Assembly: GCA_002269645.1 (NCBI GenBank)
Contig: NIVC01001076.1
Coordinates: forward strand, 62,001 to 126,000
Reading direction: 5' to 3'
From: Macrostomum lignano
Taxonomy: Eukaryota
DNA length: 64,000 nucleotides
Shown: one piece after another, positions 11,263 through 48,219 of the stretch
Numbering within the stretch: the stretch's first letter is position 1
Layout: each line of letters opens with the position of its first letter
Program-made: the position numbers and the translations under genes
The notes under the pieces: model-generated
What the model was told of the DNA's origin: nothing
Database searches by the model: none
Seen by the model: only the letters and a program-made list of their open reading frames with translations

Positions 11263-12883
11263 ACTAAGAGCTTGGCAAGTTTCTAGTTCGCAGCACTGCA
11301 TTGGATCAGGAAACAGGCCATAATTTCTCACGGACAGCAGTTAATTAGCAAAGTACAGAAAAGCAGGTGTCAGTGCGGCATCAGCGCCAATATATCTCCA
11401 TGAATCTCCATAAGTTGACAGTCGGACCTGACAATGAGGATATTTCATCTTACTCAGCAGACTCAAAGCCCTATTAGCCAATAATTGCCACCCCAAGGGA
11501 ATCCCGTCAGCAGAAAACACAGCCTTCCTAAGACAGATAGCACGAGTCCCACTAACGGAGAGGAAATATAAATGCAATATTCAGTCGGAGTGAAGTGGCG
11601 AAGTAAATGAGCAGAGAATCGAGACGTGACAGCAACGCTTCTTGAGAGGTTTGGAGCAGCCGCATGGGCCTGCTTAGGCAAACACAAGAGAGCAGCCAAA
11701 GTAGCTTATTTGCTGAACAAGAAGGCCTTTAGATATGAATAAGAATACTTTAAAGTGTTCTTTTTGCATTGGGAATAGCAACTGACTTATCTGGCTGACA
11801 ATTACGGCTGGGCAGATGGGGGCGATTGACTGATAACTAATCGTTATGTTTGTCATAGTACGAGCGAATGTTATCGATTGAGATAATTTGCAGACAGACG
11901 GTTTAAGTCGAGCATTAAGTTTAGTCAAGTAGGAGACTAAAAGTTACCTGCAGCGATGCATTTGGCTCGTAGGAGCTACAAAAGGGGGGTTGAACCGTTG
12001 GCAAAGACTGCTGTTTTCAAGCCGTTTGTGCATCTGCAAAGGTTTCCAGCCCATAGGAGCAGCAATCTTCCAAGCAAGCTTCATCGGGTCTGCAAAGCGA
12101 CCGAATGATAGCCTGCGTATCGGATTCTAACCATTAATTAGGCATGAATGCCAGCCGGGAGCATCACTGGTATCTAAGATTGCAGGATGCGCTTGGCACA
12201 GCGGACCCCAACCCTGCGAGTTACATGTGGATGCATTTTGTCGGGGAGATGCAAATATATCCCGCTGTTACTTTCGGTAACTATGCCGCACCGTGAACTT
12301 TATTCAGGTCTTGTATAGTTTTGTGGTGACGCAAACTGAAAGCTTTGGTAATCGAGAAAAGTTCTTCAAAAAAATCTGACCCTGGACAACTGAAGTAGAC
12401 GCACGCTACGCTTGATTTTCATAGAAGTTCTCTAGAACGACCTGATTTTTCTAGCGCAGAATTTCTTGATGGCGAAACCGCATTCAGCGCTTACATGCCT
12501 TCTCTCTAGAGCAGACTAAATGCACCAGCGATACTACAGATATTACCGGCCTCCATCTCGTTTCTAAGAAACCTGAGTGTAGCGTCCTTGTACTCCTGTC
12601 CTGTATGGGGCGTCAAATGTAGGGCGAGTGGTTTTCAACAAGAACATCCTTGAAGATCCAGTAACAACAGTAGCTATGGGTGAAATGTGGGGCCAGCCGG
12701 TAGCTATTGAGACACGTAAAGCAGTTTCAAAGAATAAAATTGCCGCTACATTTCATTTTGCTTAGTATATTTAATACTGTTAGTAGTAAAAACAAAAATA
12801 ATAAAACCGGACGCCGTTAAACAACTTTGCAGGCCGCACATCAGCATCTGCTAAATTAGACTTGAAGAAGTGCCCAACACGAC

Positions 12884-14065
12884 ATGAACTGTACAGTTAA
12901 GGAGACCGACCCTCTGGAAGTGGCTCTGCTGGTTGTCACTCCGGTGCTGGTGGTACTGGGCGTGGCCGCTAACTCCATCAATATAGTCGTGCTCACCAGG
13001 AAGTGGATGGCTTCATCAACTAACAACTATCTGACAGCTCTGGCCGTGACGGATCTGACTTACCTGTCAGTGTTCTACATCATCACCGTGAAGTTCTATC
13101 CAGGCGTGCTCTACAATCAGTGGTTCGCTCACATCTTGAGCTACTTGTTTCCACTGGCCAACCTGCTTAGCAACTACGCCACCTGGCTTACCTGCCTGTT
13201 CACATTCGAACGCTGGCTGGTGATCTACAAGCCAATGCTGGGCAGAAAGTATTGCACTCGGCGCCGAGCCAAGCACCTGATGCTTGGCCTGTTTCTGGCT
13301 ACCAGCCTGTTCACGTCGCCGAACTTTTTCGAGTATCGCGCAGTGCCTAAGGAGCTGCGCTGCGGCAACGCCACGCAGACTGTCTATGGCCTGGGCCCGA
13401 CGGACGCGTACAGTGTGATCAAGCGTCTCGGCTATTACCACGTCTTTGTGAGCATCTTCGTGTTCGGCCCGCTCCTATTTCTGGTGGTGTTCAATGGACT
13501 GCTAATACGCAGCGTTGTTGTAGCCCGACGCAAGCGAGCCGCTCTAGGCAGTAGCGAGGGGGCCACCTGCTCGAACAGCCTGTCTAACAAGCGGTCGGCT
13601 GCCGAGCAGCAGAAGGTGACAACTATGCTTATTGCCGTGGTTCTGGTCTTCTGTCTGTGCCAGCTGCCGTCCGCCATCATGACGCTCAAGAAGGCAATGC
13701 AACGATCCGACGACCGTAAGAAAAGCCGCGGTACCGCGGAGAGAGTCGCCAACGCGCTCGTCAACATCCTTCTGCTGGCCAATGCCGCTTGTAACTTTGT
13801 TCTGTACTCGTGCTTCTCAACGAGGTTTCGCAACACTTTCCGACAGGTGTTTCTGGGATGCAGGAACTCGGGACCCGGTGGCCGCAGCGGCGGAGGCGGA
13901 GGCGGTGCTGGTGTCACTGGCGGTGCCAGGGACGTCGCAGACGCGGAAGAGCTTCAGCAGTTGAGGTCGGCGGCGCCAACTGGAAAGGGCAATGATGGTC
14001 GTGAGTTCGATTCCTATCGACACGGACGACAACAAGCAAAGGAATTGTCGGCTGCATTCGACTAA
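12884..14065 (+). CDS. Intronless rhodopsin-family (class A) GPCR, FMRFamide/sex-peptide-receptor-like neuropeptide receptor, 393 aa
   Basis: Seven hydrophobic segments with class A motifs: TM1 ANSINIVVL, TM2 YLTALAVTDL, TM3 TFERW (E/DRY variant), TM4 SPNFFEY, TM6 VTTMLIAVVLVFCLCQLP and TM7 NAACNFVLY. N-glycosylation sequon NCT at the N-terminus. Confidence 0.92.
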   Translation: MNCTVKETDPLEVALLVVTPVLVVLGVAANSINIVVLTRKWMASSTNNYLTALAVTDLTYLSVFYIITVKFYPGVLYNQWFAHILSYLFPLANLLSNYATWLTCLFTFERWLVIYKPMLGRKYCTRRRAKHLMLGLFLATSLFTSPNFFEYRAVPKELRCGNATQTVYGLGPTDAYSVIKRLGYYHVFVSIFVFGPLLFLVVFNGLLIRSVVVARRKRAALGSSEGATCSNSLSNKRSAAEQQKVTTMLIAVVLVFCLCQLPSAIMTLKKAMQRSDDRKKSRGTAERVANALVNILLLANAACNFVLYSCFSTRFRNTFRQVFLGCRNSGPGGRSGGGGGGAGVTGGARDVADAEELQQLRSAAPTGKGNDGREFDSYRHGRQQAKELSAAFD

Positions 14066-17900: not shown

Positions 17901-20484
17901 ATAATAGTTTATGGAATAAAAATATTTTTACATTTTTCTAGGCATTCTGATCATTACTGATGGATAGCAAGCCTACAATGGCCTGAAAAACCACACAATC
18001 ATCAATCAGATGATCCTTCAGTTTCCACTTTAAATTATTTAAACTCTTTTTTGAACTTTTTAGAGTCTAACAAGCTCATAGAGTTCTCGCAAGAGTTCAC
18101 AGAGTTCTACATAGGGTAGTAGTGTGTTATCCAGTAGAGGATATTGCCAAAGTGCTGATAGGGGAAAGTTTGGCGCCACATGAACTCCTGCAGGTATGTT
18201 TCAAACAAATTGTCACTAGTTCCATGCATAGCTTGAAACTTGGCTTTGCAGTTGCCCCATATTCCCTCTATAGTATTAGTGTAAGCCGCTGAGTTGTTGG
18301 GGACTTCAGCTGCAGGAACAATAAATTATGGCACTGAAGGCTGGCTAGCCATACTGGCAGTAGCTGAAAAGTTAAAAAATGGGTTTAAAAAATTAGAGTG
18401 GGAAACTGAAGGATAATGGTGCCAAAATCTATACCAAAACCATTTATAGAATATAAGGGTCTTGGGCCAAGTCAAGGCCAAATTCAAGGCTATGCCAAGT
18501 GCTATTTTCCAGGGAAAGACTAAGGAGGTCTGCAACTTTATATATTGGCTGCAATATTACTACTGAATACTGACTATAAAAATAACTTATCTAACACTTA
18601 CCAACCTTTTCAGGCCTAGGCCTATATTTGAAAAGTTAAATAAAAATATAAAATAATTTAATGCCACAAAGTAAGAGATGGTTATCATGTCTAATTGTCT
18701 ATGTTAAGACAAACTTAAGTATGTTTACCATTTCATGCTTTAAGACTAATGCTAGAGAAAAAATTATAATTTTCAATCATTTATGGCAGATTTTTTACTA
18801 GGTTTATACTATATACCTGGCATAATAAATAGGGAGAGATGGTAGTCATCTATGAATATAGCATAAAAACTTAGCAATGATCATGTAAATTTAGATATAG
18901 AAGTTGTTTATTAAAAAAATTAAATGCTTTTATTTTTATATGAAATTAAAATGAATAAGTATAAAATAAAAAATATAAAAATTTAGAAGTTGTTGGATTG
19001 TGGCAAAATTTCTAGAATATATATTTTGTTTTACTTTTTAACATGATATCTATGTTATTTACATTTTGCTTTCAAATGAAACTTAGTTATTCCAAAAATC
19101 ATTTATAATTGTTTATTGTGCCAATTCATTTTAGTTCTTATACCAGGCATTTTTGACAAATTTTGCCTTGTTGTAACAGTGTATTGTTAAGTAGACACCT
19201 CCTTGGCAGATAGCAATTAAATTAAGCAATTGAAACTTTGTTAGATCAAATCAATATATATAGTGGGTTAGCTAGTCAGTTAATCAGTTATATCAATTAG
19301 ATTTATACAGTTAAATTAGGCTTTATTTACTTGACTGACTGGATCATGCTCAAGGGTGCTAGCAAAATAAAGCTGAGAACAGGGGCATGCTACTAGCAAT
19401 GGCAGACAATGGGAAGAGGATTGTGCTAGATAGACAAAGTGGCAATCCTTCAGTTTATAATCACCGTCTATTTTGCCTGTTTTGTTTTACAATCACCTTC
19501 TATTTTTCTAGTTTTGGTTTACGATCACCTTATATTTTGTTTATTGCAGTGCAAAAATAGATAGTGTGTTCAAAACTAAGACATAAAAACCAACAGTAGT
19601 TTCAAATAAAAAGAAAGCAAAAGTTGGCTGATCAACTAACTTTGTTTATTTGAAATTTAAAAGATTTGTACATTGGTTCACTAGTACTAGCTTATATATA
19701 TATATCACATTCAGTTTACAATCATTCAAAGCTGGCTGTAGGAAAGCATGTCAACCCTAGCTTAGTATAATTAATCTTCAGCGCCGCATCCTCTCTCACT
19801 TTCAGTTTATGATCACTTCTACATATGCATTCCATTGAAATGATCGTGAAACAAAGCTGGCTATAGGAAAACATGTTAACCCTTAGTACACTTTCTTATG
19901 GCCAGCTTTGGTTCATGATCATTTTAATAGGCAACATACATTTGGGTGAAGTATAGTAAACCAAAGGTGAAATATATAGGCTACTGTAGCTCAAACTTGC
20001 AACTTGGTCTTGACAGTTGAAATTAGTTTGACAGGTTTTCCTACTGCTAGCTTCGGTTTGTGATCATTTTAATGGGCAACATAAGTTTGGGTGATCATAA
20101 ACTGAAGGTGAAATATATGGTGCTACGACAATCTTACCATCTTTTAAAATAAACAAAGTCAGTTCGCCAACATTTGATTTTGTTTCATTGGAAACTATGG
20201 ATTTTATGTCTTAAAACTGTTTTTTTTATGGTGATTGTCACTGTTTAAGGTGATTGTCACTGTTTGGGGTGATCATAAACCAAAGGAATGCCAACAAAAC
20301 ATGCATAAGGGGCGAGGATAAGGAAAGACAAGCATGTGAGCTACAGTTTTAAAACCTTGCCAGGGAATCTACTTTTGGATAATAAAGTTCCACAATTGTT
20401 GTTACATTGATTACAATTATTTCAGTATGGAAAGGAAATAATACTTAATCTTAAAGAAAAATCTGTTTCTTTTTTCTTTTTTAG

Positions 20485-22709
20485 TGTTATCACGGCCAGT
20501 TCCAAGTCATGATAGTTTTGAAAGGACATCAGAAACGATGAAGACAAGTGGTGCTTTGCAAAGGACACTTGATGACTCAGCTATCAATTTTGATGCACAG
20601 AAAAAGCTCAGTCCAATCAAAAAAGGCAAACTTTCAAAGGTTGATGGAACAGAGTCTAATAAGAAGGTTGAAAATATTGGAATGTATGTGCATGATGGAA
20701 CACAATCTGACAGGAAGGCTGCCAACTCTGATGGAATAGACACTAGCAAGAAGACTATAGACACTGGAAAGTTTAATGGAGTGGAGACTGGCACAAAGTC
20801 TATGGACTCATCAAAGTCTGATAGAACAAAATCTAGCAGGAAGGCGACTGACACGGGAAAATCTGATGAAACAGAATCTGGCAAGAAGACGGCTGAGACA
20901 GGAAAGTCTGATGGAACAGAGCCTGGCAAAAAGACAACAGACACTGAAAGTAAAAAATCTGATGGGACAGAATCTGGCAGGAAGGCTCCCAAGTCTGATG
21001 AAACGCAGCCTGGCAAGAAGGCTTCGGACACATTAAAGACTGATAGAACAGAGCTTGAAAAGATGACTGACACTGGAAAGTCTGATGGAACAGAGTCTGG
21101 CAAGAAGTCGGCTGACACCGGGAAATCTGATGGAACAGAGTCTGACAAGAAGACGGTTTACACTGGGAAATCTGATGGAACAGAGTCTGGCAAGATGGCT
21201 GACACTGGAAAGTCTGATGGAACAGAGTCTGGCAAGAAGACGGCTGACACCGGGAAATCTGCTAGAACAGAGTCTGACAAGAAGATGGCTGACACTCGAA
21301 AATCTGATGGAACAGAGTCTGGCAAGAAGTCGGCTGACACTCGAAAATCTGATGGAACAGAGTCTGACAAGAAGACGGTTTACACTGGGAAATCTGATGG
21401 AACAGAGTCTGGCAAGAAGATGGCTGACACTGGAAAGTCTGATGGAACAGAGTCTGACAAGAAGACGGTTTACACTGGGAAATCTGGTGGAACAGAGTCT
21501 GTCAAGAAGATGGCTGAAACTGGTAAGTCTGATGGAACAGAGTCTGGCAAGAAGATGGCTGACACTGGAAAGTCTGATGGAACAGAGTCTGGCAAGAAGA
21601 CGGCTGACACTCGAAAATCTGATGGAACAGAGTCTGACAAGAAGACGGTTTACACTGGGAAATCTGATGGAACAGAGTCTGGCAAGATGGCTGACACTGG
21701 AAAGTCTGATGGAACAGAGTCTGGCAAGAAGACGGCTGACACCGGGAAATCTGCTAGAACAGAGTCTGACAAGAAGACGGCTGACACTCGAAAATCTGAT
21801 GGAACAGAGTCTGGCAAGAAGTCGGCTGACACCGGGAAATCTGCTGGAACAGAGTCTGGCGAGAAGACGGCTGACACTGGAAAGTCTGATGGAACAGAGT
21901 CTGTCAAGAAGACGGCTGACACTGGAAAGTCTGATGGAACAGAGTCTGGCAAGAAGACGGCTGACACTCGAAAATCTGATGGAACAGAGTCTGACAAGAA
22001 GACGGTTTACACTGGGAAATCTGATGGAACAGAGTCTGGCAAGAAGATGGCTGACACTGGAAAGTCTGATGGAACAGAGTCTGACAAGAAGACGGTTTAC
22101 ACTGGGAAATCTGGTGGAACAGAGTCTGTCAAGAAGATGGCTGAAACTGGTAAGTCTGATGGAACAGAGTCTGGCAAGAAGATGGCTGACACTGGAAAGT
22201 CTGATGGAACAGAGTCTGGCAAGAAGACGGCTGACACTCGAAAATCTGATGGAATAGAGTCTGGCAAGAAGATGGCTGACACTCGAAAGTCTGATGGAAC
22301 AGAGTCTGGCAAGAAGGCGGTTTACACTGGGAAATCTGATGGAACAGAGTCTGGCAAGAAGATGGCTGACACTCGAAAATCTGATGGAACAGAGTCTGGC
22401 AAGAAGATGGCTGACACTCGAAAATCTGATGGAACAGAGTCTGGCAAGAAGACGGCTTACACTGGGAAATCTGATGGAACAAAATCTGGCAAGAAGGCTT
22501 TTGACACTGTAGTATCTGATAACGCCAAATATGGTAGTTATGATTTTCATCAAAGTGTTGGGCCCATTCCTGATTGGCGTAAGATAGGCAAATCCTACAA
22601 AGGTGACAAGCCCACAGATGCTGCTGGATCAAATAAAATAATCTTTATCTTCATTGTTACTGTTTTTGTTTTTGGCGGATTATATGTTATCTACCACAAA
22701 AAGCAGAAG
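20485..22709 (+). CDS. TGOLN2-like: TGN38/TGOLN2-KCT2-like type I membrane protein, large penultimate exon (15-aa repeat ectodomain plus TM)
   Basis: Strong acceptor (T-rich)TTAG|TG and donor AAG|GTAATT. About 32 copies of TGKSDGTESGKKTAD are followed by the TM IIFIFIVTVFVFGGLYVIY and HKKQK. The upstream signal-peptide exon was not identified. Confidence 0.85.
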
Positions 22710-22840
22710 GTAATTCACATCTTTATAATAATCTGCAATTTTAGTATATTTGGATTATACAATGCTACTGTTAGTAGAGTAGCCTGACAGTTTGAGTATT
22801 TGCAGTCAAAACTTAAATTTTAAAACCAAACCGCCCTTAG

Positions 22841-23014: not shown

Positions 23015-24507
23015 ATAAAGACTAACGTGACGTTGAATAAGAAACTAATAAATAATAGCTAGAAAGTGAGGTAACGATATGGCTATTGTGCTGTGTCCTG
23101 TGTTGCGACATCAGCTATAAACATTAAGTCAAACTGATTTGTTCAATACAAAAATCCTCTGTGTTGCCAATTCGATTTGCATGGTATGCTTCTCTCTGCT
23201 GAGCTCATGCCCGTATCTTGCACTGTTTGTATTTATTTTTCGATACAGAAAGCTTCATAAGCAGTTTTTTATTCTCTGGAGTAACTTCGCTCAAAATTAT
23301 TCAGTTTATGTTGCAAACGGAAATTTTTACTTTGCCTTCTTATCACATCTCAATAGCTAGCTTAAGGGCACTGTGCACGAACTTCTGAGTACTCCTGTTC
23401 GCTCTGGGTTAGTACACAAGGCTTTTATCTATCTATTAAAAAAAATTGGTTTCATTCAATATTGCGAAAAAAACAAGTTTTCATTCGATTCTGATTTTTC
23501 GTTCGATACTCTGCCTTTTGTTCAACAGTTTGCATGCCGACTGCAGCTGAGTTTTCTTTTTCAGACATTCATTCTACACTATTTTTGTTGCTGTTCCTTG
23601 CTATTTTATGTAGACCTGCTGATTTATCGACTAGCTTGTTATGATAATAAAAACCATCTTTATGTACTTTTTCTACTTTCGCAAAATATGATTTACATGT
23701 AACATGTTGTTAAGGAGTCAAGGACGCAAAAATCGTATATATATTCCTAATCCTAATGATTGCTCTTATTCGAGTTATATGTGCTAAATTTTTGCAGAGA
23801 GGCTTGTGCGTGCTTCTGTACGTATGGCAGCGTTCTACCTATGGATTTGAACAATTATAACGCATCCTTGAGCAGCCCGCTGGTCAGTACATTAAATAAG
23901 TAAACAATACTTATCTTTCTCTTTATTTTTCTTGCCCTACGGTCAACGGGTCCTTTTTGTCGATTTAAAACCAACGGGTTTTGGGTACAGTACTAAAATG
24001 TCCTTTTTATACTTCCATAAAATGAGTGCGTTCTTATGTACACTAGCTTAATTTATTGAACAAATGAATGGTCAAAAAACTTTTTGCTGTTGTCGATTTT
24101 GGAGCAGCGTATATCGACCTCAAGTTTCTCTGTAACTCTCACTAGTAGCTGGCTAAATTATATATATATATATATATATATATAGGGTGTGGGGAGTGTG
24201 TCGCGCGTGAGAATCTCTTCCCTATTCATTGCCGTGGATTCGCAGAATGATTTTGGTGAACGCATAGGACGGTTCTACCTGCTGTAATTGTACGCATTCA
24301 TGCATTAAGCCAAGTGCGGTGATGATGGGTAAGGATGGGGTTGAGAGTAAAGATGGAAATCCTGACGAATAAACACTAGAGGTGATGCGATTTGGAATTC
24401 AGTAACCGTAGAAGCAATAGCAATTTTTCTGCCCAGAGACTCATAGTTTTTCTTATTTGCTTGATTTCATCAATACACCCCAATTTCGCCAATATAATTG
24501 GCTAAAA

Positions 24508-25716
24508 ATGCTCCGAGTTCACCCGCTCCGTGTGTACGCACACTGTCGTCGACTATGGTGGCACAGGCTAGCTGCTCGGCAGCTTCTGGCGTCCTTTACA
24601 GTCAGCTGCTTGCTCACCCTGATGATGCTCCGGCAAGCGCAGACCTGGCTGCAAATTGGCTCTGGCGACAGCTCATTAAAGATAAAAGCATCGCAGGTGT
24701 CGAATTCTTTATCCAGCGCTGCGCTGTCAGAGCCAACCTTCTCAGATATGCTGGCTGAGGTCAAGCTGTCTGTAGAACAATCGCTGTACAAATTTGACAG
24801 ACCTGGTCAGCTGCTACCGCTGATGAAGCTTAAAACTGAGTCTGAGAGGCAGCCCAAATGGCGCTCGCGTGTCGCTCGTGATTGGCTAGCCAGCCAACGT
24901 CTGCTGGTGGCAGCCACTATTCGAGACGGCGTTCAAGGCCTACCGTCAAGTCTGGGCAATCTGCGCCGTCTTCGACGACTATTCAACGACTCTAGGCTTT
25001 TGGTTGTCGAGAATGACTCGGTCGACGGAACCCGCGCCTTTCTTGTCGGAGAGGCGCAGCGCGACCTTGGCCTTCGGCTTCTGGGCTGCTCTAGCGAGGC
25101 CAGTCAGCCCTGCCGGCTCGATATTCGCTACTCCAGCGGCCGGGCTCACCTGCCTGGTTCGGCCAGCATGAATCGGAGCGTAGCTGAGGAGATCGACCGC
25201 GGCCTGGTCATGTCCGCGCTCAGGAATATCTACCTGGAGTACGCGTACAGGCACTTTGCTGGCTGGGCTGACTTGCTGCTTGTGATTGACCCGGATGTCA
25301 CCTGGACTCGCTGGAGTCTCGACCGGCTAGTCCAGGGTCTTTACTATTTCAAGACTCGGCCGCTGCTGCAACAGTTGTGCGCCAACACCATCGAAGTTCC
25401 CGAACATCGCCTATTCGACCCTTGCACTTTGACTTTCTTTCTCAACAAGCATTTCGGCGAGGATAGCCGCTATCCAGCTGTTGACTATTACGCGTCGATA
25501 ATGCGTGGACCGGCTGACCTGCCACCAGTGAAAGTTGACAGCTGCTTTCAGGCCTTTGCATTTTATCGTTTCCGCGACCTGGCCAACAATCGGCTTCTGT
25601 ACAGGCGCAGCTCTGGCGAGTGGATGTGTGAGCACAACACACTGTCCAGGCAGTTGCGGGAAGTCTACTTGGACCCGCACATGCAGCTTGAAGTTTTATC
25701 TCACAGTATCAAATAG
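24508..25716 (+). CDS. Intronless type II membrane GT-A fold glycosyltransferase (CAP59/GT69- or GT2-like), ~402 aa
   Basis: ATG at 24508, short basic tail, then signal anchor LLASFTVSCLLTLMML. Motifs TIRD...LLVVENDSVDGT, SALRNIYLEY, LLLVIDPD (DxD), VDSCFQAFAFY and CEH. Confidence 0.8.
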   Translation: MLRVHPLRVYAHCRRLWWHRLAARQLLASFTVSCLLTLMMLRQAQTWLQIGSGDSSLKIKASQVSNSLSSAALSEPTFSDMLAEVKLSVEQSLYKFDRPGQLLPLMKLKTESERQPKWRSRVARDWLASQRLLVAATIRDGVQGLPSSLGNLRRLRRLFNDSRLLVVENDSVDGTRAFLVGEAQRDLGLRLLGCSSEASQPCRLDIRYSSGRAHLPGSASMNRSVAEEIDRGLVMSALRNIYLEYAYRHFAGWADLLLVIDPDVTWTRWSLDRLVQGLYYFKTRPLLQQLCANTIEVPEHRLFDPCTLTFFLNKHFGEDSRYPAVDYYASIMRGPADLPPVKVDSCFQAFAFYRFRDLANNRLLYRRSSGEWMCEHNTLSRQLREVYLDPHMQLEVLSHSIK

Positions 25717-37784: not shown

Positions 37785-40250
37785 CCTGTCTGTCTGTCTG
37801 TCTGATCTGCCTGCCTGTCTGTCTGATCTGCCTGCCTGTCTGTCTGATCTGCCTGTCTGTCTGTCTGATCTGCCTGTCTGGTTTGTCTAATCTGCCTGTC
37901 TAATCTGCCTGTCTGATCTGCCTGCCTGTCTGTCTGTCTGATCTGCCTGTCTGTCTGTCTGATCTGCCTGTCTGTCTGTCTGATCTGCCTGTCTGTCTGT
38001 CTGATATGCCTGCCTGTCTGTCTGTCTGATCTGCCTGCCTGTCTGTCTGTCTGTCTGATCTGCCTGTCTGTCTGTCTGATCTGCCTGTCTGTCTGTCTGA
38101 TCTGCCTGCCTGTCTGTCTGTCTGATCTGCCTGCCTGTCTGTCTGTCTGATCTGCCTGCCTGTCTGTCTGATCTGCCTGTCTGTCTGTCTGATCTGCCTG
38201 CCTGTCTGTCTGTCTGATCTGCCTGTCTGTCTGTCTGATCTGCCTGTCTGTCTGTCTGATCTGCCTGTCTGTCTGTCTGATCTGCCTGTCTAATCTGCCT
38301 GTCTGATCTGTCTGTCTGTCTGTCTGATCTGCCTGTCTGTCTGTCTGATCTGCCTGCCTGTCTGTCTGTCTGATCTGCCTGTCTGTCTGTCTGATCTGCC
38401 TGTCTGTCTGTCTGATCTGCCTGCCTGTCTGTCTGTCTGATCTGCCTGCCTGTCTGTCTGTCTGATCTGCCTGCCTGTCTGTCTGTCTGATCTGCCTGCC
38501 TGTCTGTCTGTCTGATCTGCCTGTCTGTCTGTCTGATCTGCCTGCCTGTCTGTCTGTCTGATCTGCCTGTCTGTCTGTCTGATCTGCCTGTCTGTCTGTC
38601 TGATCTGCCTGCCTGTCTGTCTGATCTGCCTGTCTGTCTGTCTGATCTGCCTGTCTAATCTGCCTGTCTGATCTGCCTGCCTGTCTGTCTGATCTGCCTG
38701 TCTGTCTGTCTGATCTGCCTGTCTGTCTGTCTGATCTGCCTGTCTAATCTGCCTGTCTGATCTGCCTGTCTGATCTGCCTGTCTGATCTGCCTGTCTGTC
38801 TGTCTGATCTGCCTGTCTGGTTTGTCTAATCTGCCTGTCTAATCTGCCTGTCTGATCTGCCTGCCTGTCTGTCTGTCTGATCTGCCTGTCTGTCTGTCTG
38901 ATCTGCCTGTCTGTCTGTCTGATCTGCCTGCCTGTCTGTCTGATCTGCCTGTCTGTCTGTCTGATCTGCCTGTCTAATCTGCCTGTCTGATCTGTCTGTC
39001 TGTCTGATCTGCCTGCCTGTCTGTCTGATCTGCCTGTCTGTCTGTCTGATCTGCCTGTCTGGTTTGTCTAATCTGCCTGTCTAATCTGCCTGTCTGATCT
39101 GCCTGCCTGTCTGTCTGTCTGATCTGCCTGTCTGTCTGTCTGATCTGCCTGTCTGTCTGTCTGATCTGCCTGTCTGTCTGTCTGATATGCCTGCCTGTCT
39201 GTCTGTCTGATCTGCCTGCCTGTCTGTCTGTCTGTCTGATCTGCCTGTCTGTCTGTCTGATCTGCCTGTCTGTCTGTCTGATCTGCCTGCCTGTCTGTCT
39301 GTCTGATCTGCCTGCCTGTCTGTCTGATCTGCCTGTCTGTCTGTCTGATCTGCCTGCCTGTCTGTCTGTCTGATCTGCCTGTCTGTCTGTCTGATCTGCC
39401 TGTCTGTCTGTCTGATCTGCCTGCCTGTCTGTCTGATCTGCCTGCCTGTCTGTCTGTCTGATCTGCCTGCCTGTCTGTCTGTCTGATCTGCCTGTCTGTC
39501 TGTCTGATCTGCCTGTCTGTCTGTCTGATCTGCCTGCCTGTCTGTCTGTCTGATCTGCCTGTCTGTCTGTCTGATCTGCCTGTCTGTCTGTCTGATCTGC
39601 CTGCCTGTCTGTCTGTCTGATCTGCCTGCCTGTCTGTCTGTCTGATCTGCCTGCCTGTCTGTCTGTCTGATCTGCCTGCCTGTCTGTCTGTCTGATCTGC
39701 CTGTCTGTCTGTCTGATCTGCCTGCCTGTCTGTCTGTCTGATCTGCCTGTCTGTCTGTCTGATCTGCCTGTCTGTCTGTCTGATCTGCCTGCCTGTCTGT
39801 CTGATCTGCCTGTCTGTCTGTCTGATCTGCCTGTCTAATCTGCCTGTCTGATCTGCCTGCCTGTCTGTCTGATCTGCCTGTCTGTCTGTCTGATCTGCCT
39901 GTCTGTCTGTCTGATCTGCCTGTCTAATCTGCCTGTCTGATCTGCCTGTCTGATCTGCCTGTCTGATCTGCCTGTCTGTCTGTCTGATCTGCCTGTCTGG
40001 TTTGTCTAATCTGCCTGTCTAATCTGCCTGTCTGATCTGCCTGCCTGTCTGTCTGTCTGATCTGCCTGTCTGTCTGTCTGATCTGCCTGTCTGTCTGTCT
40101 GATCTGCCTGCCTGTCTGTCTGATCTGCCTGTCTGTCTGTCTGATCTGCCTGTCTAATCTGCCTGTCTGATCTGTCTGTCTGTCTGATCTGCTTGTCTGT
40201 CTGTCTGATCTGCCTGTCTGATCTGCCTGCGTCTGTCTGATCTGCCTGCC

Positions 40251-40335
<85 letters not shown>

Positions 40336-40461
40336 GATCTGCCTCTGTCTGTCTGTCTGCCTGTCTAATCTGCCTGTCTGATCTGCCTGTCTGTCTGATC
40401 TGCTTGTCTGTCTGTCTGATCTGCCTGTCTGATCTGCCTGCGTCTGTCTGATCTGCCTGCC

Positions 40462-40526
<65 letters not shown>

Positions 40527-40580
40527 GATCTGCCTCTGTCTGTCTGTCTGCCTGTCTGATCTGCCTGTCTGATCTGTCTG
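37785..40580 (+). repeat. ~2.8-kb complex (TCTG/GATC/TGCC) satellite filling nuclear receptor intron 6
   Basis: Units such as GATCTGCCTGTCTGTCTGTCT with block duplications. Confidence 0.97.
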
Positions 40581-40645
40581 TCCCATTATTTTGAATCCTA
40601 GTTTAGGTCCCATACTAAGCACCTATCATTAAAATAAAAGCCTAC

Positions 40646-40843: not shown

Positions 40844-40894
40844 CTGAAATTAAATACGTAACAAGAATTAATTAAACTGGTTTTTTATCTTGGG

Positions 40895-41460
40895 ATATTC
40901 TGATATCCAGAACCCCATTTGGGATATTTTGATATCTAGATCCCCATTTGGGATATTATGGTATTTAGATCCCCATTTGGGATATTCTGATATCTAGATC
41001 CACATTTGGGATATTATGGTATTTAGATCCCCGTTTTGAGATATTCTGATATCTAGATCCCCATTTGGGATATTATGGTATTTAGATCCCCATTTGGGAT
41101 ATTCTGATATCTAGATCCACATTTGGGATATTATGGTATTTAGATCCCCGTTTTGAGATATTCTGATATCTAGATTCCCACTTGGGGATATTATGGTATT
41201 TAGATCCCCATTTTGAGATATTTTGATATCTAGATCCCCACTTGGGGATATTATGGTATTTAGATCCCCATTTTGAGATATTCTGATATCTAGATCCCGT
41301 TTTGGGATATTCTGGTATTTAGATCCCCATTTTGGGATATTCTGACATCTAGATCCTCATTTTAGGATATTCTGGTATTTAGATCCCCATTTTGGGATAT
41401 TCTGATATCTAGATCTTCATTTTAGGATATTCTGGTATTTAGATCCCCATTTTGAGACAT
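40895..41460 (+). repeat. ~30-bp minisatellite (GATATTCTGATATCTAGATCCCCATTTGG) in intron 5
   Basis: Alternating variants form ~60-bp dimers. Confidence 0.92.
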
Positions 41461-41562
41461 TCAGATTTCCGAATCCCTATCGAGACATCGTGAAGTATCG
41501 ATCTGAATTTTGGGGACATTCACAGAATAGATTCACAGCAGTACAATTAGCAAGCCACTAAC

Positions 41563-41774: not shown

Positions 41775-42761
41775 CTTTAGTGTCTGTCTCGCTTAGTGTC
41801 TTTGTAGCCTTAGTATCTTTGTAGCCTTACTGTCTTTGTAGCTTTAGTGTCTTTGTAGCCTTAGTGTCTTTGTAGCCTTAGTGTCTTTGTAGCCTTAGTA
41901 TGTTTGTAGCCTTAGTGCCTTTGTAGCCTTAGTGTCTTTGTAGCCTTAGTATCTTTGTAGCCTTATTGTCTTTGTAGCCTTAGTGTCTTTGTAGCCTTAG
42001 TATGTTTGTAGCCTTAGTGCCTTTGTAGCCTTAGTGTCTTTGTAGCCTTAGTATCTTTGTAGCCTTAGTGTCTTTGTAGCCTTAGTGTCTTTGTAGCCTT
42101 ATTGTCTTTTTAGCTTTTGTGTCTTTGTAGCCTTAGTGTCTTTGTAGCCTTAGTGTCTTTGTAGCCTTAGTGTCTTTGTAGCCTTAGTGTCTTTGTAGCC
42201 TTAGTATCTTTGTAGCCTTATTGTCTTTGTAGCCTTAGTGTCTTTGTAGCCTTAGTATGTTTGTAGCCTTAGTGCCTTTGTAGCCTTAGTGTCTTTGTAG
42301 CCTTAGTATCTTTGTAGCCTTATTGTCTTTGTAGCCTTAGTGTCTTTGTAGCCTTATTGTCTTTTTAGCTTTTGTGTCTTTGTAGCCTTAGTCTCTTTGT
42401 AGCCTTAGTGTCTTTGTAGCTTTAGTGTCTTTGTAGCCTTAGTGTCTTTGTAGCCTTATTGTCTTTTTAGCTTTTGTGTCTTTGTAGCCTTAGTGTCTTT
42501 GTAGCCTTAGTATCTTTGTAGCCTTATTGTCTTTGTAGCCTTAGTGTCTTTGTAGCCTTAGTGTCTTTGTAGCCTTAGTGTCTTTGTAGCTTTTGTGTCT
42601 TTGTAGCCTTAGTGTCTTTGTAGCCTTAGTGTTTTTGTAGCCTTATCTTTGTAGCCTTACTGTCTTTGTAGCCTCAGTGTCTTTGTAGCCTTAGTGTCTT
42701 TGTAGCCTTAGTGTCTTTGTAGTCTTTGTAGCCTTAGCGTCCTAGTCTGCTTCTGTCTGTC

Positions 42762-43291: not shown

Positions 43292-43450
43292 CTGGAATCA
43301 AGTGCAGCAATTCATGAGTGTACTTTTTCAAGCTTTGGTCAGGGCTGAAATTATAAAATACTTAATAAGTATGATCACGAAGGCGCTTCACAGAGTGAGC
43401 AGGAGCATGCTTTACGGCTTACAGAGTGCCCATACAGAAAGTCACACGAG

Positions 43451-44160
43451 GAGAGTGGCATTCCTGAGTGAACGCATAGTGTGACAATTGGAGAGTGACA
43501 TTCCTGAGTGAACACATAGTGTGACAATTGGAGAGTGGCATTCCTGAGTGAACGCATAGTGTGACAATTGGAGAGTGGCATTCCTCAGTGAACGCATAGT
43601 GTGACAATTGGAGAGTGGCATTCCTGAGTGAACGCATAGTGTGACAATTGGAGAGTGGCATTCCTGAGTGAACGCATAGTGTGACAATTGGAGAGTGGCA
43701 TTCCTGAGTGAACGCATAGTGTGACAATTGGAGAGTGGCATTCCTGAGTGAACGCAGTGTGACAATTGGAGAGTGGCATTCATGAGTGAACGCATAGTGT
43801 GACAATTGGAGAGTGGCATTCCTGAGTGAACGCATAGTGTGACAATTGGAGAGTGGCATTCCTGAGTGAACGCAGTGTGACAATTGGAGAGTGGCATTCC
43901 TGAGTGAACGCATAGTGTGACAATTGGAGAGTGACATTCCTGAGTGAACGCATAGTGTGACAATTGGAGAGTGACATTCCTGAGTGAACGCATAGTGTGA
44001 CAATTGGAGAGTGACATTCCTGAGTGAACGCATAGTGTGACAATTGGAGAGTGGCATTCCTGAGTGAACGCATAGTGTGACAATTGGAGTGAAATTCCTG
44101 AGTGAACGCATAGTGTGACAATTGGAGAGTGGCATTCCTGAGTGAACGGATAGTGTGACA
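43451..44160 (+). repeat. 40-bp minisatellite (GAGAGTGGCATTCCTGAGTGAACGCATAGTGTGACAATTG), ~17 copies, intron 3
   Basis: Homogeneous tandem units; they explain several spurious ORFs. Confidence 0.95.
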
Positions 44161-44339
44161 CTTTAAGAGTTCCATTCCGTACTAGTACATATTCTTAATT
44201 TTAAAGTGAAATAGTCACATAAACCTTTTTAAGAGCCAATTTGAAATAGATATCTACCGTAGAATAACATCAAGTCCGATAGTCTAAAGTTAATTACAGT
44301 GACATTAAAAATATATACAAATCAAACAACCTAATCTAC

Positions 44340-44915
44340 CATCCAAATCGACCACCCAGATAAACCGGCCATCCAGATAAACCGGCCATCCAGATAAACC
44401 GGCCATCCAGATAAACCGGCCATCCAGATAAACCGGCCATCCAGATAAACCGGCCATCCAGATAAATCGGCCACCCAGATAAACCGGCCAAAATCGACAA
44501 TCCAGATAAACCGGCCAAAATCGACAATCCAGATAAACCGGCCAAAATCGACAATCCAGATAAACCGGCCAAAATCGACAATCCAGATAAACCGGCCATC
44601 CAAATAGACCATCCAGATAAACCGGCCATCCAAATAGACCACCCAGATAAACCGGCCATCCAAATAGACCACCCAGATAAACCGGCCATCCAAATAGACC
44701 ACCCAGATAAACCGGCCATCCAAATAGACCATCCAGATAAACCGGCCATCCAGATAAACCGGCCACCCAGATAAACCGGCCAAAATCGACAATCCAGATA
44801 AACCGGCCATCCAAATAGACCATCCAGATAAACCGGCCATCCAAATAGACCATCCAGATAAACCGGCCATCCAAATAGACCATCCAGATAAACCGGCCAT
44901 CCAAATCGACCATCC
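44340..44915 (+). repeat. 17-bp minisatellite (CCATCCAGATAAACCGG) with 27/30-bp variants, intron 3
   Basis: Direct inspection. Confidence 0.93.
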
Positions 44916-44978: not shown

Positions 44979-45560
44979 CATAGGCAAGCGCTCAGCCCTG
45001 AACTTAGACATCCGGTCCTGACAGAAGTAGGCGGTGCGCCGATGCCCCTCGAGAATGAGCTCCGTGCTCTCGGCAATGGCCCGGCCGCAGACAGGGTTCT
45101 GGCTGAACTGATCGTTTAAATCGGCCTCCCAGTACTGCACAAATTTGTCAACCGCGCACAGGATTAACTTGGCCGAATCGCCGGACACGTCCGGACGATC
45201 GCAGAGTGAGCAAAGCCACGCGGCCGAGCGACTGTCGGTGTCGCCAGTCAGGCGGTGGCACAGGCGGACAAGCGACTGGCCCGATAGCAGCGGCTGACAG
45301 CCGGTTAGCCAGGCTTCGCTAAGCTGACCGTCCGGCGGCGGCGGGGGAGGAGGCGGGTGAGGCGGCGGAGTCGGGGAGCTCCGACTGCTGCTGCCGCAGC
45401 GACCGGAGCTCGATGCCCAGGGTGACTGGGCGCCGACGACTGCGACCGACGGAGTGACCGGGACGGATTGTGCGGATGGCGGAAACGATGCCGACGGCGG
45501 TGGCGGCGGCGGCGGTGAGGTGGCGACGGGACTCGATAGAAGTCGGGGCAAGGAGCTGGT
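44979..45560 (-). CDS. Nuclear receptor exon 3 (Pro/Ser-rich hinge, start of LBD)
   Basis: Acceptor CTCTGCAG|ACC and canonical donor ATG|GTGAGT; 582 nt, phase 0/0. Confidence 0.75.
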
Positions 45561-45629
45561 CTGCAGAGTTTAATAGGACAGGATGTACTTCAAATACTAC
45601 TTTTTTCCCTGATTTTTAGTGTGAATGTC

Positions 45630-46125
45630 AGCGACCTTTGACTGGCACAGTTTGACTGTCAGTGACTTTTTGACTGGCTCAATTTGACTGTCAGTGACTT
45701 TTTGACTGGCACAATTTGACTTTCAGTGACTTTTGACTGGCACAGTTTGACTGTCAGTGACTTTTGACTGGCACAGTTTGACTGTCAGTGACTTTTGACT
45801 GGCACAGTTTGACTGTCAGTGACTTTTGACTGTCAGTGACTTTTGACTGGCACAGTTTGACTGTCAGTGACTTTTGACTGTCAGTGACCTTTTGACTGGC
45901 ACAATTTGACTGTCCGCGACTTTTTTTGACTGTCAGTGACCTTTTGACTGGCACAATTTGACTGTCAGTGACCTTTTGACTGGCACAGTTTGACTGTCAG
46001 TGACCTTTTGACTGGCACAATTTGACTGTCAGTGACCTTTTGACTGGCACAATTTGACTGTCAGTGACCTTTTGACTGGCACAGTTTGACTGCCAGTGAC
46101 CTTTTGACTGGCACAATTTGAATGA
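45630..46125 (+). repeat. ~31-bp minisatellite (TGACTGTCAGTGACCTTTTGACTGGCACAGTT), intron 2
   Basis: Units contain the palindrome TGACTGTCA. Confidence 0.92.
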
Positions 46126-46282: not shown

Positions 46283-46684
46283 CCGAGCACAGGAGGTGAC
46301 AGGCGATTTGTCGCTATTTAGCGAGGCCTGTCGTCTAAAACAGGTGCGACGACAGACTTGGTTTTCAAATTCCCGCCGTTTCAGCTCGATGAAGCGCAGC
46401 AGTTGCTGATCACTGATTGTCTCAGCGTCTACAGAGCTCGGCGAAGGCGGCTGCTGGGTTCGACGCTTTGCGCCGCCGACTCCGCGACCGCCGTTGCCGT
46501 TGTCGGCGTCGAGTCTGGCCCGACGGCCGAGTTTCGAACGCTGCCGGCCCATGTTAACGGCGCAGCACTTTTTCAAACGGCACCATTGGCAGGCGTTGCG
46601 AGTCTGCGGCGTTATCGCCAGCGGGCTGGCGTGGGAGCAGGCGCCGGCCGGGTTGCGGGACGACACGATACGGCGGAAAAAGCC
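46283..46684 (-). CDS. Nuclear receptor exon 2 (second zinc finger and T-box); donor at 46283 or 46358
   Basis: Acceptor TTTTCCAAG|GGC; reads GFFRRIVSSRNPAGACSHASPLAITPQTRNACQWCRLKKCCAVNMGRQRSKLGRR. Both candidate donors (GTGCGT, GTCTGT) are phase 0. Confidence 0.88.
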
Positions 46685-46737
46685 CTTGGAAAATGGGAGA
46701 GAGCGAAACTTTTAGATCATCCGCCTGCCTTAATCAG

Positions 46738-47330
46738 GTAGATCTATCTACCTGCCATATAAGTTGTCAATTGGGTGCCCACTGTACTGCTGAGATAGAT
46801 CTATCTGCTGCTCACTGTGCTACTAGAATAGATCTATCTGCTGCTCACTGTGCTACTAGAATAGATCTATCTGCTGCTCACTGTGCTACTAGAATAGATC
46901 TATCTGCTGCTCACTGTGCTACTAGAATAGATCTATCTGTTGCTCACTGTGCTACTAGAATAGATCTATCTGCTGCTCACTGTGCTACTAGAATAGATCT
47001 ATCTGCTGCTCACTGTGCTACTAGGATAGATCTATCTGCTGCTCACTGTGCTACTAGAATAGATCTATCTGCTGCTCACTGTGCTACTAGGATAGATCTA
47101 TCTGCTGCTCATTGTGCTACTAGGATAGATCTATCTGCTTCCCATTGTGCTACCAAGGTAGTTCTATCTGCCATTAACAGCTACTAGGATAGATCTATCT
47201 GCCATTCAATAGGTACTAGAATATATCTATCTGCCATTCAGCAGCTACTAGGATAGATCTATCTGCCATTCAACAACTACTATGATAGATCTATCTGCCA
47301 TTCAACAACTATTATGGTAGATCTATCTGC
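46738..47330 (+). repeat. 33-bp minisatellite (GATCTATCTGCTGCTCACTGTGCTACTAGAATA), intron 1
   Basis: Fills nearly the whole intron. Confidence 0.93.
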
Positions 47331-47335
47331 CGCAC

Positions 47336-47587
47336 CTTGCAGCCTTCGCAAGTGGGCACACCGTAGTGCACACCGCTGGCTACATCCTGGCAAACAGCGC
47401 ATGAAGAACCGCGCGGACTGTTGGACAAGCCTGAAGCCGAACCGGAAGCTGAATTCGACACCGCAGAAACAGACGACTTGCCCGACATAGATGTCGACAA
47501 GTCCAGCGACTTTCGAGCCGGAAGCAGCAGCCGGGACTGCGGCTGAGTAGCTTGAGCTTGAGCTTGAGTCGAGTCTGCGCTTGCCAT
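47336..47587 (-). CDS. Nuclear receptor (NR1-type, P-box CEGCKG) exon 1: A/B region and first zinc finger
   Basis: ATG at 47587 with an upstream in-frame stop; reads CAVCQDVASGVHYGVPTCEGCK|; donor AAG|GTGCGG. The seven exons join in frame to ~700-720 aa. Confidence 0.9.
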
Positions 47588-48219
47588 TTTTGGCCTAGGT
47601 CACGCACGCGATCTTGAATGACACTAGTTCTGGCTGCAAATGCACAGGGCAAATGCTCAAATAAATCAGTACAACAACAGGTTACAAGTAAGAAAACAAG
47701 CCTAAAACTTCAAGCCTTTTTTGTCACACTTTTTGTTCAGGCATCAACTTTAACTACAGGTGTTTCATATTTAGCATCAATTATTCTATAACTATTTAGA
47801 TTCGTGCAACTTTAGGATTTTTATATCAAACTGTCAAAGTTAAATAAGCTATAAACATGGAGCCTGCAGACTTTTACACAAATTCTGTGGGTCAAAGGCT
47901 TAGCAATATAAATGATATGGTATACAGTGTTTGGTGTTTTATTTTACATTGAATTCTTTTGACTGATTCTGGATTTGGACCCACAATACCAAATGGCAAC
48001 CCACTATAATTCTATTGCTTAGAAAACTCTATCTCAATTATATAGATAATAGTTAACTTTATATCAATTGAAAATTGGCCACTTACTCAACAAGCCCTAC
48101 ATCATAGCATAGCATATATACATAACACTTAGCCAATCTAGTGAATCTAGCCAAATGATAAAATGGCCAAAGCAGGTAATGATATTTTTCAAAACTGATC
48201 AACCAAGCACCATGCTTGG

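Follow-up and report, generated by a model that had tools for sequence, protein, structure and literature searches.

A 64,000-nucleotide stretch of the genome of the free-living flatworm Macrostomum lignano (contig NIVC01001076.1, assembly GCA_002269645.1, Mlig_3_7; hereafter the window) carries on its minus strand a nuclear receptor gene in which one of the eight zinc-ligand cysteines of the DNA-binding domain (DBD) has given way to leucine. To judge from the sequence evidence, this missing-cysteine variant is neither an error nor the mark of a dying gene, and the DBD appears to have been kept functional. We propose that the common ancestor of four NR1-type paralogues lost the second zinc-ligand Cys of finger II to Leu or Ile and that the DBD stayed functional after the loss. 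The second zinc would now be held by Cys100, His102 (at +2), Cys116, and Cys119, giving a C-x-H-x13/14-C-x2-C (CHCC) finger. The aliphatic residue at the old Cys site and Cys125 in helix 3 would re-pack a core that also does without the usual Tyr before finger II. For this explanation as a whole, including His102 as a ligand, we would put the probability at roughly 0.55. We take as shown, with very little doubt, the sequence and gene model, the presence of three genomic copies, the family-wide conservation, the purifying selection, and the predicted canonical fold; the identity of the fourth ligand, the DNA specificity, and the effect on dimerisation are what we infer from them.

The receptor gene and its second zinc finger

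The range 46545-46684, from the exon-2 acceptor through ...AVNMGR, had been singled out in an initial annotation made from the letters of the window. Translation of 46380-46690 on the minus strand gives SKGFFRRIVSSRNPAGACSHASPLAITPQTRNACQWCRLKKCCAVNMGRQRSK... / SKGFFRRIVSSRNPAGACSHASPLAITPQTRNACQWCRLKKCCAVNMGRQRSKLGRR..., and Pfam zf-C4 (PF00105) matches residues 62-130 with 82 bits against a cut-off of 21.1, identifying the region as a nuclear receptor DBD. A phmmer search of the Protein Data Bank (PDB) sequences returned 88 nuclear-receptor DBDs at E <= 1e-3, the best at 6e-20. Finger I is intact (C63-AV-C66-x13-C80-EG-C83-K, that is C-x2-C-x13-C-x2-C), and the NR1-type P-box CEGCKG runs into GFFRR to form CEGCKGFFRR. 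Finger II reads C100-SHASP-L106-AITPQTRNA-C116-QW-C119, followed by RLKKCC, with the spacing C-x5-L-x9-C-x2-C. Seven of the canonical eight zinc-ligand cysteines are therefore present and the sixth is Leu106, which lies opposite the second Cys of finger II in the RARalpha, RARbeta, and RORgamma DBDs in an ungapped phmmer segment. The initial annotation had reported a Leu (CTG) at this zinc-ligand position; the codon at 46621-46619 and the gap-free alignment with solved DBDs both bear this out, and the translation agrees with it on the otherwise exact spacing, the His at +2, and the extra Cys in KKCC. The residues discussed below are encoded on the minus strand as follows:

46621-46619, minus strand: Leu106, CTG, at the position of the second zinc ligand of finger II, which is the sixth DBD cysteine and the end of the D-box
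46639-46631, minus strand: Cys100-Ser101-His102, TGC TCC CAC, the C-x-H unit
46639-46637, minus strand: Cys100, TGC
46633-46631, minus strand: His102, CAC, candidate replacement ligand
46591-46580, minus strand: Cys116-Gln-Trp-Cys119, the retained C-x2-C pair at the N-terminus of helix 3
46591-46589 and 46582-46580, minus strand: codons of Cys116 (TGC) and Cys119 (TGC)
46567-46562, minus strand: Cys124-Cys125 of KKCC, both TGC

Cys124 is the usual non-ligand ninth cysteine, and Cys125 is specific to the family and stands in place of a hydrophobic core residue.

The gene is BOX15_Mlig030638g1, annotated as a "hypothetical protein" of 723 aa (PAA72595.1, P0003), and all its top protein matches are from M. 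lignano. Over the 10.3 kb of the gene, the retrieved locus (L001) does not differ from the window (100% identity). Joined together, the seven exons translate to PAA72595.1 with every residue the same and with GT/AG at all borders, so that the frame is indeed intact over seven exons, as had been claimed. The exons are:

47587-47336, minus strand: exon 1, with ATG at 47587-47585, the Ser-rich N-terminus, and intact finger I; donor AAG|GTGCGG
46684-46283, minus strand: exon 2, entered through the acceptor ccaag|GGC (46684) and left through the annotated donor CGG|GTGCGT (46283), with GFFRR, finger II, the C-terminal extension (CTE; NMGRQRSKLGRR), and the first part of the hinge
45560-44979, minus strand: exon 3, with the Pro-rich hinge, leading into the C-terminal helical domain (LILCAVDKFVQYWEADLN...)
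43291-42960, minus strand: exon 4, with the helices 3-5 region of a divergent ligand-binding domain (LBD; QLMLRIVAFARNI ... DSDKRRLIVHHCFKVIAMRF)
41702-41563, minus strand: exon 5, with the LBD helices 7-8 region (GVTEQELAFLSAICLTSP)
40843-40646, minus strand: exon 6, with the LBD helix 9 region
37761-37496, minus strand: exon 7, with the C-terminal end of the LBD and the tail; stop TGA

Finger I is encoded in an upstream open reading frame (ORF) at 47315-47599 of the minus strand, with GTGCGG directly after its coding end, and the DBD intron lies between CK and GFF. A 619-aa model using another exon-2 donor at 46358 (after ...EFENQ) and an exon-3 acceptor at 45323 was rejected, as the annotated 723-aa protein matches the window exactly. 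The annotated donor is also preferred because the EFENQVCRRTCFRR segment is conserved in the paralogues, and VCRRTCFRR, kept in the paralogues, favours the annotated exon 2/3 junction. A tblastn search found no second copy of the gene within the 64-kb window.

The M. lignano genome is partly duplicated, and Mlig030638 is present in three genomic copies: g1 in the window, g3 (PAA82786.1, NIVC01000452.1, L002), and g2 (PAA52732.1, NIVC01003192.1, L003; annotated product of 303 aa). Both g1 and g3 keep an unbroken ORF, of 723 and 724 aa respectively, and all their exon borders are GT/AG. From copy to copy, exons are 95-100% identical and introns ~92-96%. The DBD is identical in 3/3 copies, including the codons TGC TCC CAC GCC AGC CCG CTG, and the peptide ACSHASPLAI is also found in proteins P0004, P0006, and P0009 of the older ML2 assembly (UniProt). 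A sequencing error is an unlikely origin of the Leu codon because three substitutions are required to go from CTG to TGY and because CTG is found in 3/3 copies. The three near-identical copies show 9-23 differences, with a ratio of nonsynonymous to synonymous differences per site (pN/pS) of 0.16-0.33, which is weak evidence for so few changes. In g2, the reading frame shifts within the exon 3 proline run, (CCG)n (L003 12636-13225); this copy could be a decaying duplicate, or the frameshift could be an assembly indel in the low-complexity run.

The GenBank annotation of Mlig_3_7 derives solely from a genome-guided RNA-seq transcriptome (StringTie/TACO, TBONE, TransDecoder), from which novel transcripts below 0.5 reads per kilobase per million (RPKM) were dropped (PMC5730564). 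Since this annotation is transcriptome-derived, the seven-exon model is itself evidence of transcription and splicing.

The paralogue family, its selection and its predicted fold

Four M. lignano paralogues were found, all with Leu or Ile at the second-Cys site of finger II:

Mlig030638 (window gene), finger II: ...GACSHASPLAITPQTRNACQWC...
Mlig030316, finger II: ...GACAHSVPLEMTPQTRNTCQWC...
Mlig004368, finger II: ...GSCGHIIPIEMTPQTRNTCQWC...
Mlig030609, finger II: ...APCGHSEAPLAISPATRNACQWC...

Their consensus is C-[SAG]-H-x2/3-P-[LI]-x9-C-QW-C-RLKKCC. Fixed in 4/4 paralogues are the His at +2, the Pro before L/I, KKCC, the Trp of C-Q-W-C, and an NM in place of the GM of other receptors; the loop residues around the His and the Pro differ among them. 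Mlig030609 carries a one-residue insertion between the His and the Pro, so that six residues separate its first Cys from the Leu, against five in the others; with the insertion at this point, the His stays at +2 from the Cys and the Leu nine residues before the next Cys.

Coding DNA was compared for three of the four paralogues (L001, L004, and L005) with Nei-Gojobori distances; the fourth paralogue has an NCBI record, PAA86796.1 (P0200). The proportion of synonymous differences (pS), the nonsynonymous distance (dN), and the ratio of nonsynonymous to synonymous distances (dN/dS) were:

DBD (68 codons): pS 0.53-0.76 (near saturation), dN 0.08-0.10, dN/dS 0.06-0.11
Finger I: pS 0.68, dN 0.02-0.04, dN/dS 0.01-0.02
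C-terminal domain (LBD): pS 0.65-0.79, dN 0.39-0.74, dN/dS 0.18-0.44

In these three genes the L/I codons are CTG, CTG, and ATA, the His is CAC in 3/3, and the Pro codons are CCG, CCA, and CCT. The DBD ratio together with the shared L/I rules out a pseudogene. The comparison also indicates that the loss of the Cys is older than the divergence of the paralogues and that the DBD has been under purifying selection since. The initial annotation had named two outcomes that would count against it, and neither was found: no TGC or TGT stands at the codon in the 3/3 genomic copies, nor a Cys in the ML2 proteins, and the DBD dN/dS between paralogues is far from 1. No family member from outside M. lignano was found among 5.8 billion clustered proteins, a database in which other Macrostomum transcriptomes may not be included. 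As found so far, the family thus appears specific to M. lignano, a point absent from the initial annotation.

An AlphaFold2 (AF2) model of residues 57-154 from a 14-sequence DBD alignment had a mean predicted local distance difference test score (pLDDT) of 81, with 87 for the D-box block. It superposes on the DBDs of RXR, RAR, ROR, Rev-erb, and GCNF with a root-mean-square deviation of 0.9-1.5 A over 70-76 residues (0.9-1.0 A for Rev-erb and ROR) and TM-scores of 0.84-0.94, normalised by target length. The variant finger is, in this prediction, compatible with the canonical DBD fold, in which two helices pack at right angles and the CTE follows. Structure modelling had been put forward as a check in the initial annotation; it returned the canonical fold, but zinc was not modelled and the alignment biases the model.

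Pfam Hormone_recep (PF00104) matched neither the full model at E <= 1 nor single LBD exons. When a C-terminal profile of the four paralogues was compared with the whole PDB, however, solely nuclear-receptor LBDs were retrieved (Rev-erbalpha, VDR, PPARdelta, and RORbeta), at weak E = 0.4-6. When canonical LBDs of E75, E78, HR3, and molluscs were aligned and compared with this region by hhalign, 165 columns from helix 3 to helix 9 matched (Prob 72%, P = 3.4e-5). They include the signatures of helix 3 (RIVAFARNI), helices 4-5 (DSDKRRLIVHHCFKVIAMRF), and helices 7-8 (GVTEQELAFLSAICLTSP). On these profile matches, we read the C-terminal region as a probable, very divergent LBD. A full-length AF2 model from a six-sequence alignment was unusable (pLDDT 33).

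Zinc coordination and DNA binding

When the piece comprising finger II and the CTE was run with HMMER against 1.84 billion representative proteins, all of them scanned, 212 matched at E <= 1e-3. From the best ~150 proteins of these 212 matches, 203 finger II domains were aligned, 179 of them canonical CCCC fingers, which have Cys at the ligand site by construction of the set. Outside the family, and setting aside a few alignment shifts, three of the 203 aligned fingers are truly without the second Cys:

P0017, DBD5: SCNHSSGLEITVKTRKKCIKC
P0017, DBD3: YCCHSSDIKLTLGALNKCIKC
P0020 (mite Dinothrombium tinctorium), DBD3: ECCCDGNSEITSENRNRCTYC

The residue at +2 in these three is H, H, or C. His at +2 occurs in 1/17 canonical fingers of the same proteins and two similar multi-DBD proteins, and in 6/179 canonical fingers overall; Cys is absent from the eight commonest residues there. 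At the position of Cys125, canonical fingers have L, F, I, V, or M in 171/179 cases (L, F, or I in 163/179) and never Cys. Two positions before finger II, most canonical fingers carry an aromatic residue (Y, H, or F), and the family has G.

The ligand shift is the best-supported mechanism because C-x-H is invariant in the family and because H or C stands at +2 in the Cys-less fingers. The initial annotation had offered a CHCC or a three-ligand finger; the CHCC half of this proposal gains from the His invariant in 4/4 paralogues and the H/C at +2 elsewhere, although the coordination itself stays conjectural. Several points weigh against our proposal. Conservation and co-occurrence are what lies behind His102 as a ligand, the co-occurrence sample is small and was retrieved with a query that itself carries His at +2, and the two P0017 fingers may come from a single event. 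The C-x-H spacing is unusual for a zinc knuckle. The AF2 alignment consisted mostly of canonical DBDs, which partly imposed the canonical fold on a model made without zinc. The genes are known from sequence and transcript-derived annotation; no family member was found in the Logan transcript assemblies, and expression rests on the published annotation pipeline.

That the variant is an artefact or a product of decay, whether a sequencing or assembly error or a degenerating pseudogene, is suggested by the exon 3 (CCG)n frameshift of g2 (L003) with its 303-aa product and by the failure of Pfam to detect an LBD. This explanation is effectively refuted by the three changes that separate CTG from TGY, the DBD identical in 3/3 copies, the L/I in four paralogues with a DBD dN/dS of 0.06-0.11, the intact ORFs of g1 and g3 with a transcript-derived model, and the LBD homology by profile comparison (P = 3.4e-5). 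A more serious competitor, which we nevertheless consider unlikely, is a module holding zinc with three protein ligands (Cys100, Cys116, and Cys119) plus water, or holding none, in which Leu106, Pro105, and Cys125 pack hydrophobically and His102 is kept for a DNA-backbone or protein contact or similar. A three-ligand finger was already an alternative in the initial annotation, and the old ligand site, always aliphatic (L/I) and never ligand-capable, speaks for it, as does the joint change of core positions (Tyr lost, Cys125 gained, GM to NM). However, the remaining three Cys are invariant despite near-saturated synonymous sites, suggesting that metal binding was kept, the H/C at +2 in unrelated Cys-less fingers is left unexplained, and structural zinc sites are normally four-coordinate, a rule that such a module goes against.

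Cys125 of KKCC could also be imagined as the substitute fourth ligand, given that it is family-specific, coincides with the loss of the Cys at position 106, and has no counterpart in the canonical fingers (Cys in 0/179). We hold this to be very improbable: the residue lies nine residues past Cys116 in helix 3 (a helix in the model at segment positions 61-70), which by ordinary helix geometry places it about two and a half turns, at least 12 A, from the zinc site, and since the site is canonically buried and hydrophobic (L, F, or I in 163/179), Cys fits there as a core substitution.

The ligand shift proposed for the flatworm family could have a wider counterpart. The Cys-less multi-DBD fingers follow the same pattern as the family, C-x-[H/C]-x3-[L/I/S]-x9-C-x2-C, but P0017 and P0020 have three or five DBDs, other P-boxes, and no KKCC, and no homology was seen beyond the DBD. 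Loss of the Cys might have been rescued recurrently by a +2 ligand. This would have produced a distinct C-x-[H/C]...C-x2-C class with independent origins in the flatworm family, a mite multi-DBD protein, and one further receptor with several DBDs, and would alter the D-box loop and with it the choice of partner or DNA-site geometry. We advance this only tentatively, the odds being somewhat against it.

Tandem-DBD nuclear receptors were observed among the database proteins: P0017 (876 aa) has 5 DBDs, P0019 (875 aa) 6, P0021 (746 aa) 4, and P0020 and P0184, both from D. tinctorium, have 3. In P0017 and P0021, the C-terminus in addition resembles an LBD. P0021 is no gene-model artefact because it lies on an intron-free transcript contig (L006, SRR33369740). 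The literature found describes two-DBD receptors only (PMC10497141). Two other proteins, P0014 (991 aa) and P0018 (308 aa), are top matches solely through the peptide TRNRCQYCRLQKCLALGMSRSG, of which they carry as many as 11 repeats; they resemble gene models over a tandemly repeated nuclear-receptor exon, not genuine receptors.

In the window gene, finger I is intact, and so are the P-box recognition helix (CEGCKGFFRR) and a CTE (KLGRR) like that of NR1D/E/F. By analogy with known family behaviour, we would therefore expect the protein to bind (extended) AGGTCA-type half-sites and probably to depend little on the D-box. Rev-erb and ROR (NR1D/E/F) bind as monomers, and the D-box may be less important here, the CTE being of the NR1D/E/F type. 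The altered dimerisation suggested in the initial annotation would be a reasonable conjecture for a receptor whose D-box loop has a new shape and changes quickly from paralogue to paralogue.

Relation to known receptors and significance

The DBD sequence places the gene in NR1, nearest to Rev-erb/E75, E78, ROR/HR3, RAR, and an unnamed mollusc NR1. With phmmer, 72-75 bits are reached against the window DBD by those of RARalpha, RORgamma, and Rev-erb; the best matches outside the family are E75, E78, HR3, and mollusc proteins (Babylonia/Nucella; Mytilus "NR1D1/ROR-beta-like"). None of these matches reaches past the DBD (query coverage 11-15%). For the LBD, Rev-erb comes first, though the match is weak. 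NR1D/E/F and the mollusc NR1 share the P-box CEGCKGFFRR with the window gene, and the mollusc CTE GMSRSAAKLGRRSRK resembles that of the window gene (NMGRQRSKLGRR), ...KLGRR being common to both. They have, however, C-x5-C, Tyr or another aromatic residue two positions before finger II, GM, and L/F/I at the Cys125 site, in all of which the family differs, and their LBDs pass PF00104, whereas that of the window gene does not.

PPARs resemble the window gene in belonging to NR1, in the P-box CEGCKGFFRR, and in an extension of the AVGMS..FGR type, and their fingers have a three-residue D-box (C-x3-C). A PPAR (NR1C) label for the gene is not supported: its family has a D-box spacing of five or six, and PPAR is the best match of neither the DBD nor the LBD. 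By phmmer the PPARdelta DBD scores below RAR, ROR, and Rev-erb, and no PPAR-specific LBD signal was found for the family. The label comes from Cheng et al. 2021, to whom the entries in S5 File of Wu & LoVerde attribute the assignment of four M. lignano DBDs to NR1C (PPAR) (PMC8363021). Wu & LoVerde left their own column blank for the four genes and saw no evidence for PPARs in M. lignano (PMC8363021). Their S5 File lists PAA82786.1 (= PAA52732.1), whose DBD is identical to that of the window gene, and PAA72595.1 (g1) is unlisted (PMC8363021). The gene and its DBD sequence are already in GenBank and in a published supplement. In the literature found, which did not include the inaccessible Cheng et al. 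2021, there was no mention of the missing Cys, and a literature search for the Mlig gene identifiers gave no match.

The closest known parallel, which the initial annotation did not name, is HR96b of parasitic flatworms (NR1J; Vitellogenic factor 1, Vf1), which has a CHC2 second finger, is essential for schistosome female development, and according to Wu & LoVerde 2021 has this finger in common with the nuclear receptors of no other animal studied to date (PMC8363021). Both are flatworm nuclear receptors with a non-Cys residue at the same ligand position, and in both the three remaining ligands, like the DBD outside this position, are conserved. HR96b, however, has His at the position of the lost Cys, whereas the window family has L/I there and its candidate His four residues earlier. 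The P-boxes also differ (CESCKAFFRR, typical of HR96, versus CEGCKGFFRR), so that the window gene shows neither the His at the second ligand nor the CESCKAFFRR that mark HR96b/Vf1. HR96b belongs to the parasitic Neodermata and has an extra exon within the DBD; the window gene belongs to the free-living Macrostomorpha and to a different subfamily, and has no such exon.

Several observations concern the surroundings of the DBD exons. All six introns of the gene are each mostly occupied by their own tandem-repeat array (window positions 37786-40582, 40890-41466, 41777-42726, 43450-44178, 44352-44915, 45618-46121, and 46776-47331):

Intron 6: ~2.8 kb, 4/21-bp CTGT-type array
Intron 5: 30/60-bp units
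Intron 4: 17 bp x 56 copies
Intron 3: 40-bp and 30-bp arrays
Intron 2: 31/32-bp array
Intron 1: 33 bp x 15 copies

Long spurious ORFs arise from these repeats in all frames. The stretch of exons 2 and 3 is a single exon in Mlig030316 and Mlig004368 (L004 5008-6111; L005 17425-18501), and the hinge intron 2 of the window gene (46282-45561) is mostly the 31/32-bp tandem array; it could represent an intron gain or the intronisation of hinge sequence. Elsewhere in the window, a single-exon ORF at 12866-14062 of the plus strand encodes a 399-aa rhodopsin-family G protein-coupled receptor (Pfam 7tm_1 82 bits, 7TM_GPCR_Srw 88 bits). Two ORFs, at 20442-22784 of the plus strand (781 aa, internally repetitive) and 24421-25713 of the plus strand (431 aa), have no Pfam match.

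The impact of the finding is limited outside nuclear-receptor structure and flatworm gene-family evolution. Within these fields, the eight DBD cysteines are treated as invariant in nuclear receptors and gene-family surveys often filter on them; the four M. lignano genes are absent from one published catalogue, where the column is blank, and appear as PPAR in another. Transgenesis is established in M. lignano (PMC5730564), and RNA interference and in situ hybridisation are also in use, making in vivo follow-up feasible. After the CHC2 finger of HR96b, the family would represent a second, different way around the D-box Cys, and a variant under such strong selection implies that the second zinc module tolerates re-wiring.

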